From assembly GCA_054661495.1 (NCBI GenBank), contig BAAFSQ010000500.1, forward strand, positions 1-5,154: a DNA stretch of 5,154 bases, in the 5' to 3' direction. Both the position numbers and the translations under genes were made by a program. The notes under the pieces were generated by a model, which saw only the letters and a program-made list of their open reading frames with translations, did not search any database and was not told the DNA's origin. Shown here piece by piece: positions 287 through 5,154 of the stretch (positions within the stretch are counted from its first letter, which is position 1; the number at the start of each line of letters is the position of its first letter). Source of the stretch: Zygophlyctis sp. KS116 (Eukaryota; Fungi; Chytridiomycota).

Positions 287-287
287 T

Positions 288-304
288 TGGCGTTATCAGC
301 ACCA
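288..304 (+). promoter_or_regulatory. Primer binding site TGGCGTTATCAGCACCA, probably complementary to the tRNA-Ile anticodon arm
   Basis: Starts 1 nt after the LTR-terminal CA with TGG. The reverse complement TGGTGCTGATAACGCCA forms a 5-bp stem and 7-nt loop with GAT at the anticodon position. The position is secure; the primer identity rests on recalled tRNA-Ile sequences. Confidence 0.85.
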
Positions 305-315
305 AGGACAGACAA

Positions 316-1074
316 ATGGAACGAATGTTAGATACAGCATTTTTAAGTGGATTAATGAAATTTGATGGATCAACTGTGGCAAGCACAGATTGGATTATGG
401 AGTTTCTGGATGCAAGAGATGTTGCTCAGTGGACAGAAGAGGAGGCATTGCGATCATTCAAATTCTTGATGAAGGCTGATGCAAAGAGATGGTTATACAC
501 AGTTAGCTTGGATCCTGAATCAAAAGATTATAAGGTTTCAGATTGGATAAAGAAGTTAAAAGAACAGTTTCCGGATGAATTTACCACGACTCAGCGCTAC
601 ACGGGTACGCTTGAAGGGTTGATGGGATTACGTTGCGGCGAGATCGAAAGGATGGAAGCTTATGTCTCACGTTTCAAGAGATATAGTCAGACCGTTGATC
701 CAGAATTGTGTAGTCCTACCGGTGTGCATCAAACATTTTTAGCTTCATTGAAAGACTCCCATCCACAGTTATGGTGGTCAGTTAAGTTGTTGAAATTGGA
801 AGATTGGAAGCAAGTCTATGGAAATGTTCTCCAGATTGCAAGCTGGGGAGTACCTCCTCCTGCATTACATGCCGTAACAAGTGCCGACACTCCTCGTCCG
901 ATCCCTTTGAAGCACGAAACACAGCGTATCGACATTGATTCACAAATTCAAGATCTCAGCGCTAAAGTAGAAAATCTTACTTTATTGATAAAGAATACTC
1001 CAGAGAAACGGGAAAAGACATGTTTCCGATGTAATCAAAAAGGTCATATCGCAAGTGATAAGGAGTTTCACCCT
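316..1074 (+). other. Gag region: capsid-like domain, coiled-coil segment and nucleocapsid zinc knuckle (approximate limits)
   Basis: Retrotransposon-gag-like pattern DWIMEF...W..EEAL....LMKADAKRW...W...LKEQF, MHR-like LRCGEIERMEAYVSRF (628..675), heptad segment IDIDSQIQDLSAKVENLTLLI (928..990), and CFRCNQKGH (1021..1047). Confidence 0.8.
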
Positions 1075-4000
1075 GATTATCAGAGACCCAATCGTAGTCC
1101 AGCAACAGGAGCGAATGCAATTCCTATCGGGACAAATCAATTTGTACAATCGACATCAGGTCCATCTAGTCAAAATGCAATGTCATTAATTGAAGAAAAT
1201 TCTGAACCAGTTGCAGCAGTGAAGAGAATCAGAGTGGACGACTATTTGAACGAGCCTGAAAGGGAAGTATTAGACAAAGGTGTACAAGCCAAGGGAGCCA
1301 AGAAAAATGACTTGCCGAAGAAGAAAGTGTTAAAGACCACTCCGTTGACTGCATCAATCTTAAATGCTTCTGTGTCTGTACCTCTGCGTGAATTACTAGC
1401 ACAACCGCGTGTTGCTAGTAATGTCATGGCTCAAATCAGGTCAAATAAGATTCCCCAACCAGCACGCTCTCTTAAGATCGAAAAGCGATCAAAACCTTCA
1501 TATTTAGTCGCCAAAATTGATGGGAATTTACTGCCAGTTTATTTGGACAATGGTTCCTCATATTGTGTCATCTCTCCTTCGTTCGTCAAGAAGTACGCAT
1601 TAGAAGATAAAATGGAACTCCTTGAAGAACCTTTATTTTTAAAGCCAGTTACAGGGGACTCAGTAGAATGTATTTACGGTATTCGACAGGCCATCGAAAT
1701 TGCTGATACTACATTCAAATTTAATCTAATTGTCATGAAAGGAAGTAATTGTCCTCTCATGTTGGGATTAGAGGAGCTAAAAACGTTCAAAGCTATTGTA
1801 AACTATGATACTTGCACACTAACTCTTCATTCTTTAAATAAAATAGCTACAGTACAGCTCTATACAAAGGAAGAAGTACATCAAGTTTTGGATTCAGACG
1901 ACACGGAAAGTGATGAAGATGAATATGAGTATGTACAGCGTCTCGTGCAGGATGAATATCTTAGGAAGATAGAAGACACGATCGATGAACCTGCAAGTGA
2001 TTTTGAAATTAAATTCATTCAGAAAAATCAGGATATATTTGCTAAAGAACTTTCTGAAATTCCAGGAATGTCTTGGACGCCTCATCAAATCGTCTTAGAA
2101 CCGAACGTGAAGCCGGAGTCAGCGAAACTCCGTAGATACTCCCCAAAGGAAAGAGAGTCTATCAGAATAGAGATTGATAAGATGTTAACCTTTGGAATTA
2201 TAGTCCCTTCAACTTCTTCGTGGTCTTCACCAATTGTTTTAGTGACAAAACCCGATGGTTCAATTCGATTCTGCGTGAACTACAAGAAATTAAACAATGT
2301 AACTCTCAAAGACAAGTTTCCTTTACCTCGAATTGATGATAGTTTAGACAGTCTCGCTGGGAAGAAAATCTATAGTACTTTGGACTGTTTTAGCGGTTAT
2401 TGGCAAGTACCACTCCACCAAGACACACAGCCTTTAACATCCTTTATCTCTCCATTTGGATCTTATCAATTCACAGTACTACCATTCGGCCTTACAAATG
2501 CCCCTGCAGTATTTTCGAGAATTATGCAGACCATCCTAGCACCATACCTTTATGAATTTGTCATTGTTTATATTGATGACATATGTATCTTCAGTGATAC
2601 TCAAGAAGATCATCTCAATCATCTCGCTCTTATCTTTGAACAGTTACGGAAATATCAAGTGAAACTTAAGCTTAAGAAATGCGATTTCTTTCGGACATCA
2701 TTTACCTACCTCGGGCATGTAGTTGATTCAACAGGGATTAAACCTGATCCTTTGAAAGTTCAAGTCATAAGAGACTTTACGAGCCCTTGTAATGTCAGAG
2801 AAACACGTTCGTTTATTGGGTTAGTATCATATTTTCGTAAATTTATTCCTGGAGTAACCGAATTATTGTCTCCCTTACAAGCTGTTGTAATATCGAATGT
2901 CTCATCCAAACGATTCCAATGGACAGAAGAGGCACAACACAACTTTCACCTTTGCCAAAAGTTATTAACTTCTGATTTATGTTTGAAATTTCCCGACTTC
3001 AATTTGCCATTCATTCTATCCACAGATGCCTCATCGTTCGCAGCAGGAGCCATTTTAGAACAAGAGATCGGCGTCGTTAGCTACTTTTCCAAGAAATTCA
3101 GTGGAAGCGAGTTAAACTACTCAACATATGAAAAAGAATTATTTGCAGTGATCCTCTCAGTTAAAAAGTTCGGTCATTATCTAAAATCTGGCCGTTTCAC
3201 CATTTATACAGATAATTCAGCTGTCTCAGCATTGTTAAGACAACCCTTAGCTGAAAACACTCGTGTCACACGTTGGATAACATACTTACTCTCTTTTGAT
3301 TTTATTATTATTCATCGAAACGGAAAAGTAAATCAAGCTGCTGATTTCTGCTCTCGACATCCCGTTGCCACTATTACCGAGGATTCACGATCTCCCTATC
3401 AAAAAGTCTACTCTTTTTTACAGAATCAACCTGGTAATTTTTCACAAAGCGTTATCTCTCTTGCTCGCAAGTTTTGTATCATTGACGATAAGTTATATCG
3501 CCAAAGCACACCTCTACCTTTGTTAGTATTAGATAGCCCCGCACATGTTCAAGCCGTTTTGTACCACTTCCATGATTTGATGTCACACCCAGGGGAGAAA
3601 GTGGTACGGCGTTGGATAATGCCTCGATTCTGGTACCCTCGTCTAGGAAAGATTATTCAAAGTTATTGTAAATCCTGTGATACATGTCAGAAGTATCAAC
3701 AAAGACTCCCAGACTATAAATTCTTAGGTATTTCTTCAATATCTGGTTTATTTTATGAATTTCAAATGGATTTCTTAGGACCACTACCAGAAGGTACTAA
3801 CAATGCGAAATATGTTCTAGTTGCAGTAGAAAAGTTAAGTCGCTATCCAATCGCTGTATCCGTGAAAAGTACAACAGCAAAAATTGCCATGGAGTTTCTC
3901 TCCTCAGAGATCATCGCTCGATTTGGAGTACCTCAGGTCTTAACTGTAGATCAAGGAAAATGTTTTGTGGCCGAAGACTTTCAAAACTTCGTAAAAAAAT

Positions 4001-4692
4001 GCGGAATTAAGTTAAATCTTCTACCTGCATATCAAGCCGAATGGAATGGATCAGTAGAACGTTTAAATTTGACAATTCGACAATGTTTAAATAAGACATG
4101 TACGACACCTTTCAAATGGAAAGAATGGCCACTATATTTAGATCAAATATTATTGTCTCTCCGAACTAGAAAATCAGCAGCTACCGGATATTCACCCTTT
4201 TATCTCTTATATGGATTCGAACCTAGATTGCCGCTCGACATAGAATTTGAACTAGCAGAACCAAATTATTCAACTGAATCTAGACAATATGAAATCGCTC
4301 ATTTACCTGCAATACATCAAGAGTTGAAACGTATCTCGAAATCTACCGACAAGAAGGTTATCTTCGAAACAGGACAATTCGTCTTATTGTTACGACCAAC
4401 TTTACGAAAGAAATCTATAGACAGCAAGTTAAAAGCTAGATATTTAGGTCCATACAAGATCATCGCTAAGTTGCCAAACGACATGTATCAAGTAATCTCG
4501 GAAAAAGGAAAATTACGAAATGTTCATGTTAGTCGATTATTGCCATATTTTATGCGAAAACTAGACAATCTAAATGTCATGTCTCTCGGGGAAGGGGAAT
4601 GTCAGGACCAATTATCTCTTGCTCCTTCGTATCATCTGAACAAGTTATTCGAATCATGTTTCAATACGGATGACGTTCACGTCGAGGATTAG
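316..4692 (+). CDS. gag-pol: Gag-Pol polyprotein, 1458 aa from the first ATG (the ORF track starts at TTG 247 inside the LTR)
   Basis: Stop-free frame from 235 to TAG at 4690..4692. First ATG at 316, alternative at 325. Contains capsid-like Gag, CX2CX4H knuckle, LDNGS protease, YIDD RT, TDAS RNase H and HHCC/DD35E/GPY integrase. Confidence 0.95.
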   Translation: MERMLDTAFLSGLMKFDGSTVASTDWIMEFLDARDVAQWTEEEALRSFKFLMKADAKRWLYTVSLDPESKDYKVSDWIKKLKEQFPDEFTTTQRYTGTLEGLMGLRCGEIERMEAYVSRFKRYSQTVDPELCSPTGVHQTFLASLKDSHPQLWWSVKLLKLEDWKQVYGNVLQIASWGVPPPALHAVTSADTPRPIPLKHETQRIDIDSQIQDLSAKVENLTLLIKNTPEKREKTCFRCNQKGHIASDKEFHPDYQRPNRSPATGANAIPIGTNQFVQSTSGPSSQNAMSLIEENSEPVAAVKRIRVDDYLNEPEREVLDKGVQAKGAKKNDLPKKKVLKTTPLTASILNASVSVPLRELLAQPRVASNVMAQIRSNKIPQPARSLKIEKRSKPSYLVAKIDGNLLPVYLDNGSSYCVISPSFVKKYALEDKMELLEEPLFLKPVTGDSVECIYGIRQAIEIADTTFKFNLIVMKGSNCPLMLGLEELKTFKAIVNYDTCTLTLHSLNKIATVQLYTKEEVHQVLDSDDTESDEDEYEYVQRLVQDEYLRKIEDTIDEPASDFEIKFIQKNQDIFAKELSEIPGMSWTPHQIVLEPNVKPESAKLRRYSPKERESIRIEIDKMLTFGIIVPSTSSWSSPIVLVTKPDGSIRFCVNYKKLNNVTLKDKFPLPRIDDSLDSLAGKKIYSTLDCFSGYWQVPLHQDTQPLTSFISPFGSYQFTVLPFGLTNAPAVFSRIMQTILAPYLYEFVIVYIDDICIFSDTQEDHLNHLALIFEQLRKYQVKLKLKKCDFFRTSFTYLGHVVDSTGIKPDPLKVQVIRDFTSPCNVRETRSFIGLVSYFRKFIPGVTELLSPLQAVVISNVSSKRFQWTEEAQHNFHLCQKLLTSDLCLKFPDFNLPFILSTDASSFAAGAILEQEIGVVSYFSKKFSGSELNYSTYEKELFAVILSVKKFGHYLKSGRFTIYTDNSAVSALLRQPLAENTRVTRWITYLLSFDFIIIHRNGKVNQAADFCSRHPVATITEDSRSPYQKVYSFLQNQPGNFSQSVISLARKFCIIDDKLYRQSTPLPLLVLDSPAHVQAVLYHFHDLMSHPGEKVVRRWIMPRFWYPRLGKIIQSYCKSCDTCQKYQQRLPDYKFLGISSISGLFYEFQMDFLGPLPEGTNNAKYVLVAVEKLSRYPIAVSVKSTTAKIAMEFLSSEIIARFGVPQVLTVDQGKCFVAEDFQNFVKKCGIKLNLLPAYQAEWNGSVERLNLTIRQCLNKTCTTPFKWKEWPLYLDQILLSLRTRKSAATGYSPFYLLYGFEPRLPLDIEFELAEPNYSTESRQYEIAHLPAIHQELKRISKSTDKKVIFETGQFVLLLRPTLRKKSIDSKLKARYLGPYKIIAKLPNDMYQVISEKGKLRNVHVSRLLPYFMRKLDNLNVMSLGEGECQDQLSLAPSYHLNKLFESCFNTDDVHVED
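1501..1830 (+). other. Retropepsin-type aspartic protease domain (approximate limits)
   Basis: VYLDNGSSYCVIS active-site motif (DNG at 1546..1554) and a downstream LMLGLEEL matching the ILG-x-D motif. Confidence 0.85.
2083..2740 (+). other. Reverse transcriptase domain (approximate limits)
   Basis: SSWSSPIVLVTKPDGSIRFCVNYKKLN, TLDCFSGYWQV (Asp 2383..2385), LPFGLTNAPAVF, YIDD (2569..2580) and YLGHVV. Confidence 0.97.
3007..3357 (+). other. RNase H domain
   Basis: TDAS (3022..3033), NYSTYEKELFAV, IYTDN and NQAADFCSR; all four acidic catalytic positions are present. Confidence 0.95.
3571..4548 (+). other. Integrase: HHCC, DD35E core and GPY/F C-terminal module, no chromodomain
   Basis: H-X4-H-X29-C-X2-C (3571..3687), D at 3769, D at 3949 and E at 4057 (35-residue spacing), GPY at 4447..4455, and VHVSRLLPY ending at 4548. 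Confidence 0.96.
4588..4599 (+). promoter_or_regulatory. Polypurine tract GGGGAAGGGGAA (plus-strand primer)
   Basis: Twelve consecutive purines, (GGGGAA)x2, abutting the TG of the 3' LTR. Confidence 0.95.
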
Positions 4693-4808
4693 ATCATTTG
4701 TTGTCGACGTCATCAGGGAGAATAAAAAGAATAAAGAGAATAGACTTTGGATTTAGTTTATTCATTTATTGAGAGAGAGAATTCATAAAATAGAAGAGAA
4801 GCATTACA
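4600..4808 (+). repeat. 3' LTR (209 bp)
   Basis: Direct repeat of 78..286 (offset 4522), immediately preceded by the polypurine tract. Confidence 0.98.
4721..4735 (+). terminator. Candidate polyadenylation signals (AATAAA x2) in the 3' LTR; copies at 199..204 and 208..213 in the 5' LTR
   Basis: AATAAA at 4721..4726 and 4730..4735, about 30 nt after the gag-pol stop codon, followed by a T-rich stretch. Confidence 0.55.
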
Positions 4809-5154
4809 GTGAGGCTTGATTTGGTGGCTGGGTCATGTCCGGACAGAGTTGTGAATTTGTCAAACGTTTAAATATGATTGGATGTGTGATCTCGTTGTTT
4901 CGTTGTTTACTTTCCGGGACTTTCTGCATTTGCAATTGATGCATTCTATCTAATGCAGCCGCTAAAGGACTGGATTTCACGTATGTGGACGAGAATCTCG
5001 TGGATGTTCGATTGGAAAACAAAGGTGAATTCAATTATAATAGTTTTAGATTATAAAACTGTCGTCCAGACCTAAATAAAGCAATCAAACGCACTCTTTG
5101 AAATAAAGAAACGAAACATTTGTGATTAAGCCCACAATGCAACTATTGCCATTA

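Follow-up and report, generated by a model that had tools for sequence, protein, structure and literature searches.

A predicted primer binding site complementary to the anticodon arm of host tRNA-Ile in a Ty3/gypsy retrotransposon of Zygophlyctis sp. KS116

Analysis of the window, i.e., the whole stretch of 5154 bases studied here, which is the entire contig BAAFSQ010000500.1 (C500) in the 12.7-Mb, 1175-contig assembly of the chytrid Zygophlyctis sp. KS116, showed a single intact Ty3/gypsy LTR retrotransposon of 4.73 kb that represents a recent insertion. The element is bounded by two identical LTRs of 209 bp with TG...CA termini (5' LTR, positions 78–286; 3' LTR, positions 4600–4808; all features are on the forward strand), which part ways immediately after their ends, at 287 (T) and 4809 (G), respectively. 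In the independent run X2, a Logan unitig corresponded exactly to positions 78–286 and had approximately twice the depth of the element interior. A single gag-pol ORF of 1458 aa (316–4692) begins with an ATG at 316 and stops 93 nt into the 3' LTR. Its layout comprised gag, protease, reverse transcriptase (RT, with the motif YIDD), RNase H, and an HHCC zinc domain with the integrase core, and the Pfam matches along the ORF were RVP_2 (406–505), RVT_1 (644–802), RT_RNaseH (894–994), Integrase_H2C2 (1076–1129), and rve (1150–1239). A polypurine tract read from the sequence (GGGGAAGGGGAA, 4588–4599) abuts the 3' LTR. The element was assigned to Ty3/gypsy based on the domain order PR-RT-RH-INT, as claimed in the original prediction, and the LTR pair with TG..CA ends, the primer binding site (PBS) after the 5' LTR, and the polypurine tract before the 3' LTR were in agreement with this assignment. 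No target-site duplication of 4–5 bp was found, the flanks reading ..CAGCCC and GTGAGG..; this has no bearing on membership of Ty3/gypsy by sequence. The Gag zinc knuckle (1021–1059; CFRCNQKGHIASD) is without a fourth Cys at the expected spacing, and the protease active-site triplet (approximately 1549–1569) reads D-N-G instead of D-T/S-G in an otherwise intact ORF. A search with the Gag portion alone returned nothing.

Both flanks (1–77 and 4809–5154) were multi-copy in run X2, at 2–4 times the depth of the element, and at position 77 of the 5' flank a different contig departs. Because of the multi-copy flanks and the missing target-site duplication, the contig may have been assembled by joining through repeats. 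The element itself is single-copy in the host assembly. Near-identical copies were present in freshwater, lake, and estuary metagenomes from several studies, and a freshwater metatranscriptome contained short contigs 97–99% identical to the element, which alone are no proof of transcription. A 4521-nt contig in run X4 was circular, position 4599 being connected to 78 via the LTR. The simplest explanation is a circle created by the assembler across both LTRs, although a 1-LTR circle is possible.

The predicted PBS (288–304; TGGCGTTATCAGCACCA) starts with TGG (288–290), one base past the terminal CA of the 5' LTR. Its reverse complement, TGGTG-CTGATAA-CGCCA, folds into a 5-bp stem with a 7-nt loop, in which the stem pairs are, in tRNA numbering, T27-A43, G28-C42, G29-C41, T30-G40 (a G-U pair), and G31-C39. 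The original prediction had described both this geometry and the TGG start correctly, and had compared the site with the anticodon arm of eukaryotic tRNA-Ile(AAU). A pattern search of the genome allowing one mismatch first located three loci, which are three identical tRNA-Ile(AAT) genes (ARAGORN; Rfam RF00005, 65.9 bits) reading ...GAGCG-TGGTG-CTAATAA-CGCCA-AGGTC..., so that positions 27–44 of the host tRNA-Ile are TGGTGCTAATAACGCCA-A, i.e., TGGTGCTAATAACGCCAA. The predicted arm was present exactly in all three genes. Identity of the site to the complement of these genes was 16/17 for positions 27–43 and 17/18 for 27–44, or 18/18 when an I34:C pair is counted, and the only difference, as anticipated, was C297, which faces the wobble position 34; the gene has A here, and inosine is expected in the mature tRNA. 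T287, which lies between the CA of the LTR end and TGG, is opposite A44 of the host tRNA-Ile; it either extends the PBS to 18 bases or acts as a 1-nt spacer before it. The 3'-end reading had been expected to be a misfit because of the G that it needs at position 61, and none of the 3' ends compared fitted equally well: the best match among 29 distinct host tRNAs was that of tRNA-Ser(CGA), with 6 contiguous bases and 13/18 identity. The comparison with the host genes confirmed that positions 288–304 are complementary to the whole anticodon stem-loop (27–43) of the host tRNA-Ile(AAU/IAU) rather than to any of the tRNA 3' ends compared.

The exact 17-mer was found 5 times in the 12.7 Mb and its 14-nt core 22 times, compared to 0–1 for the reversed control, which indicates that these occurrences are not due to chance. 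All exact 17-mers and most core sites either adjoined the end of an LTR or preceded the gag of a retroelement; the sites on C171 and C760 were unassigned. Each of the five exact 17-mers followed a terminus of LTR type ('..CA T|TGG..' or '..TA T|TGG..'), and the sequences flanking them were unrelated on both sides. The identical 17-mer was present in the gypsy families C545, C226, C966, and C156, which have unrelated flanks, and variants with 1–2 mismatches in the families C236 and C375, so that at least six gypsy families of the host besides that of the window element share the site. The T preceding TGG was shared by 6/7 gypsy families with an intact or near-intact PBS, a metagenome relative included. 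Family C545 is represented by an intact gypsy element (1416 aa) with Ty3 capsid, PR, RT, RH, and INT domains, and the best match to the window polyprotein among 5.8 billion proteins was P0001 (37% identity), whose loci in two separate metagenome assemblies (L084 and L085) carry an identical TTGGCGTTATCAGCACCA upstream of the ORF. The polyproteins of the window element, C545, and P0001 were mutually 37–38% identical over approximately 1430 aa. As 18 bases remained unchanged while their surroundings diverged beyond recognition, the site is very probably functional with both of its edges fixed; conservation was thus not confined to 12–14 nt but covered the full 17–18 nt, in families with 37–38% identity and unrelated flanks. 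The host genome contains at least 120 further gypsy copies besides those compared here.

A chromovirus on C159 (L050) was considered as a possible third carrier lineage of the 14-nt site and rejected, since its own LTRs are followed by a different, non-tRNA-Ile sequence and the nearby 14-nt sites belong to copia fragments. This gypsy element (L050:1835–6790) has a chromodomain, identical 266-bp LTRs (1835–2100 and 6525–6790), and the target-site duplication CACAG; its post-LTR sequence TTTTTTTGAATTGAAC showed no match to tRNA-Ile and no clear match to its own LTR. In a Smittium culicis element (L208), the post-LTR sequence also differed from the tRNA-Ile-arm site, and no clear self-priming signal was found in either of these two elements. 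The distant relatives L086, L207, L209, L210, L225, and L226 were without a recognisable 5' LTR end or without the Ile-arm site. None of the 120 stretches obtained in an exact-pattern scan of metagenome contigs with the 14-mer was followed by a retroelement; apart from three tRNA-Ile(GAT) genes, they were chance matches. The 14 matches to the 17-mer in viral contigs were all attributed to chance.

Many Ty1/copia elements of the same genome carry the 14-nt core CGTTATCAGCACCA, corresponding to tRNA-Ile 27–40, directly after the CA of the LTR, and their Gag ATG is often immediately 3' of the PBS or overlaps its last A. A complete copy (C236, L049:3215–7807) has identical 198-bp LTRs, a 5-bp target-site duplication (ACCTT), and the purine tract GAGAGGGGG. 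In two copia elements the PBS runs into the complement of the tRNA-Ile D-arm, with 13/16 matching positions in C561 (L066, PBS 4159–4172; family-wise P = 0.00025) and 11/16 in C329 (L064, PBS 5570–5583; family-wise P = 0.027). The relic in C561 includes one extra base at the position of G26 and three mismatches at tRNA positions 16–18, where D16, D17, and Gm18 are usual. These stretches look like fossil read-through of the plus-strand stop, and they point to tRNA-Ile itself as the primer that was copied. Such over-extension relics were seen in copia elements, not in gypsy. Two copia PBSs (C64:40109–40122 on L075, and C337:1338–1351) have T instead of C facing position 34 and match the unedited gene, which could be the outcome of C-to-T mutation or of priming by unedited tRNA.

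Based on the sequence comparisons above, we estimate a probability of roughly 0.8 that T287 together with 288–304 binds the anticodon stem-loop (27–43/44) of the host cytoplasmic tRNA-Ile(IAU), with a 5' fragment of this tRNA as primer. Because a primer must offer a 3'-OH where the duplex ends, the minus-strand primer would have to be a tRNA-Ile cut after A43 or A44; these two ends are indistinguishable, as the first base added to an A43 end would also be A. The 3' end of the fragment would be the internal C41-C42-A43, mimicking the normal CCA end of a tRNA, and this would explain why the PBS starts with TGG like a normal one. For the copia type, the primer would end at G40, near the end known for copia and Ty5. 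Since the copia sites stop at 40, either two cut sites or a heterogeneous pool of fragments must be assumed, which is a point against the proposed priming. A second such point is t6A37, expected in ANN-decoding tRNA, whose location within the duplex could make pairing less stable or retard the reverse transcriptase; the duplexes of the proven tRNAiMet primers of copia and Ty5 include it as well, a feature common to these systems and the window element. The nuclease involved must leave a 3'-OH, for which an RNase P-like activity would be a better candidate than one of the RNase T2 or angiogenin type; RNase P was proposed for primer cleavage in copia and Ty5 (PMC5371799).

In eukaryotes, position 34 of tRNA-Ile(AAU) is occupied by inosine, a base that pairs with C and that reverse transcriptases read as G. 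C297 would accordingly be the partner of inosine-34 in the mature tRNA-Ile, and each cycle would write it anew when the primer is copied into plus-strand strong-stop DNA. C faced position 34 in 22/22 exact core sites of the genome. The sharp edge of the PBS at position 27 may in turn reflect N2,N2-dimethyl-G26 (m2,2G26) halting the reverse transcriptase: a C after ..ACCA, as required for pairing with G26, was seen in just 2/30 PBS contexts. The host tRNA-Ile has G26 together with G10-C25 and C11-G24, the context in which Trm1 makes m2,2G26, and the host has a Trm1 homologue. Interference of m2,2G with reverse transcriptases and a Trm1-dependent signature at position 26 were reported (PMC12140624), and a modification-defined plus-strand stop is known to set PBS length, m1A58 giving the usual 18 nt (PMC13191261). 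A broader and more tentative reading, to which we would give slightly less than even odds, is that the gypsy clade switched from priming by tRNA 3' ends to an internally cut tRNA-Ile with C41-C42-A43 as its CCA-3'OH, and that the PBS records modifications of the primer, namely C at inosine-34, the edge at m2,2G26, and, in the copia relics, the extra base at 26 and the errors at D16/D17/Gm18.

Among the alternatives, the one that survives best is an anticodon-arm primer whose source is a minor tRNA-Ile(GAU) isodecoder not included in the fragmented assembly, in which case C297 would form an ordinary G:C pair and be uninformative on inosine. Genes for tRNA-Ile(GAT) with the exact arm TGGTGCTGATAACGCCA do occur on the metagenome contigs L095, L111, and L198, and the host assembly consists of 1175 contigs without a completeness estimate. 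These three genes are nuclear-looking and clustered with other tRNA genes. We nevertheless consider a GAU primer unlikely, since the exact 17-mer occurs in the 12.7 Mb only at PBS sites, as opposed to three AAT genes, and the assembly, of whose detected tRNAs 29 sequences were compared, contained no AUC-reading GAU gene with a PBS-type anticodon arm. Eukaryotes normally decode AUC via I34, which would be needed for this purpose if the host is without a GAU gene. The D-arm relics also match the D-arm of the AAT gene, but the same D-arm could be present in a GAU isodecoder.

Considerably less probable is that the 17-mer serves as some other cis element adjoining the LTR, for instance in packaging, in dimerisation, or in silencing guided by tRNA fragments, and that priming proceeds otherwise, e.g., by self-priming of the Tf1 type. 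The Tf2-like labels of relatives and a weak SH3_Tf2-1 match would be consistent with this. However, in the window element, C545, and P0001, the LTR showed no stretch of ≥6 nt with Watson-Crick complementarity to the PBS region, which excludes Tf1-type self-priming for these three families. Moreover, over 20 elements from both superfamilies have the site at the obligatory PBS position, its edges coincide with the tRNA landmarks 27 and 43/44, and relics of tRNA copying exist. Additional tRNA contacts of the bipartite-PBS type were looked for in three families, and the 8–9-nt D-loop matches obtained were at chance frequency. LTR elements were not enriched near tRNA genes either: by a rough count, approximately 7–8 of the 62 genes had an RT match within a few kb, vs. 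approximately 7 expected.

The least probable alternative is that an undetected host tRNA or small RNA with the genuine 3' end ...GCUGAUAACG-CCA (3' end ...GCUGAUAACGCCA) primes in the canonical way. The TGG start one base past the LTR could be adduced in its favour, as could the limited set of 62 tRNA hits scored out of 1120 first-look candidates (29 distinct sequences compared). It is already largely refuted by the required G at the near-invariant C61, the best real 3' end with its 6 contiguous bases, the D-arm relics indicating tRNA-Ile, and the location of 22/22 exact 14-mer and 34/34 exact 10-mer sites outside detected tRNA genes. At the examined sites ARAGORN found only the tRNA-Ile genes themselves, and none of the 62 tRNA genes found in the fragmented assembly was located at an exact GCTGATAACG site.

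Priming by a tRNA-Ile fragment would have close parallels among known systems. Drosophila copia and yeast Ty5, the precedent invoked in the original prediction, are established cases of half-tRNA priming and use the anticodon stem-loop of tRNAiMet (PMC5371799; Ke et al. 1999 cited there). As in those elements, the PBS of the window element adjoins the 5' LTR and complements a tRNA anticodon stem-loop, and priming would require a 5' tRNA fragment whose newly created 3' end is located within or close to the anticodon stem. The window element differs in being Ty3/gypsy rather than Ty1/copia, in matching the elongator tRNA-Ile rather than the initiator Met, in its putative primer end at 43/44, i.e., at the junction of stem and variable loop with an internal CCA, compared to approximately 39/40 inside the stem, and in a duplex of 17–18 nt. 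In plants, a 1/2 tRNA-Ile PBS was reported in 92% of 260 elements of the Ty1/copia lineage Bianca, and 1/2 tRNA-Met in the lineages Osser, Bryco, and Gymco-II; in that survey half-tRNA primers were exclusive to Ty1/copia and found in no Ty3/gypsy lineage (PMC6317226). Bianca resembles the window element in the predicted use of tRNA-Ile as a half-molecule primer but belongs to Ty1/copia; with respect to tRNA species and half-molecule use, it looks similar in type to the copia elements of the host, with their 14-nt site abutting the LTR. The original prediction had included neither this precedent for tRNA-Ile, nor the agreement of C297 with inosine-34, nor the shorter site in the copia elements of the host.

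Canonically primed elements, i.e., Ty3 (tRNAiMet), Drosophila gypsy (tRNA-Lys), and HIV-1 (tRNA-Lys3), share with the window element a TGG-initial PBS 1–2 bases past U5 and a PBS length of approximately 18 nt; a modified base that stops plus-strand strong-stop synthesis (m1A58; PMC13191261) defines the inner PBS edge in those elements, as is proposed for the window element; with canonical Ty3/gypsy elements it also shares the order PR-RT-RH-INT and the polypurine tract. In contrast to these, the complementary tRNA segment is internal (27–43/44 vs. 59–76), the proposed stop is m2,2G26 instead of m1A58, and the primer would have to be made by cleavage. The Tf1/sushi group likewise represents a non-canonical mode in chromodomain-less or Tf-like fungal Ty3/gypsy elements that needs an internal RNA cut (PMC4600332), but its defining complementarity between the transcript 5' end and the PBS is missing in the window element, whose PBS matches a host tRNA. 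Internal anticodon-arm complementarity, the lack of a fitting 3' end among the 62 tRNA genes detected, and in-register conservation, which characterise the half-tRNA-primed class, were all found. The interpretation in the original prediction is thus supported by comparative evidence, and its three refuting conditions all turned out in its favour.

Half-tRNA priming has so far been treated as a speciality of Ty1/copia. A search of the full-text literature yielded no report of it in Ty3/gypsy, with an older report in a subscription journal being possible, and the comparisons support superfamily, cut site, and length as the features that would be novel here within a known mode of priming. If a Ty3/gypsy clade uses the tRNA-Ile anticodon arm, neither superfamily would be evolutionarily bound to one particular primer end. 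As copia elements match tRNA-Ile 27–40 and gypsy elements 27–43/44 in one and the same genome, the question of how the primer is cut becomes testable by direct comparison. PBS finders restricted to tRNA 3' ends would mislabel or miss such elements. If the clade-wide switch is true, a host or particle activity would cut tRNA-Ile at 40/41 and 43/44 and leave a 3'-OH. The C at position 34 and the stop at 27 additionally suggest that the PBS reports tRNA editing and methylation in uncultured eukaryotes. This idea of a modification footprint is attractive but unproven; if true, the modification status of tRNAs could be read from the retrotransposon sequences of unculturable organisms.
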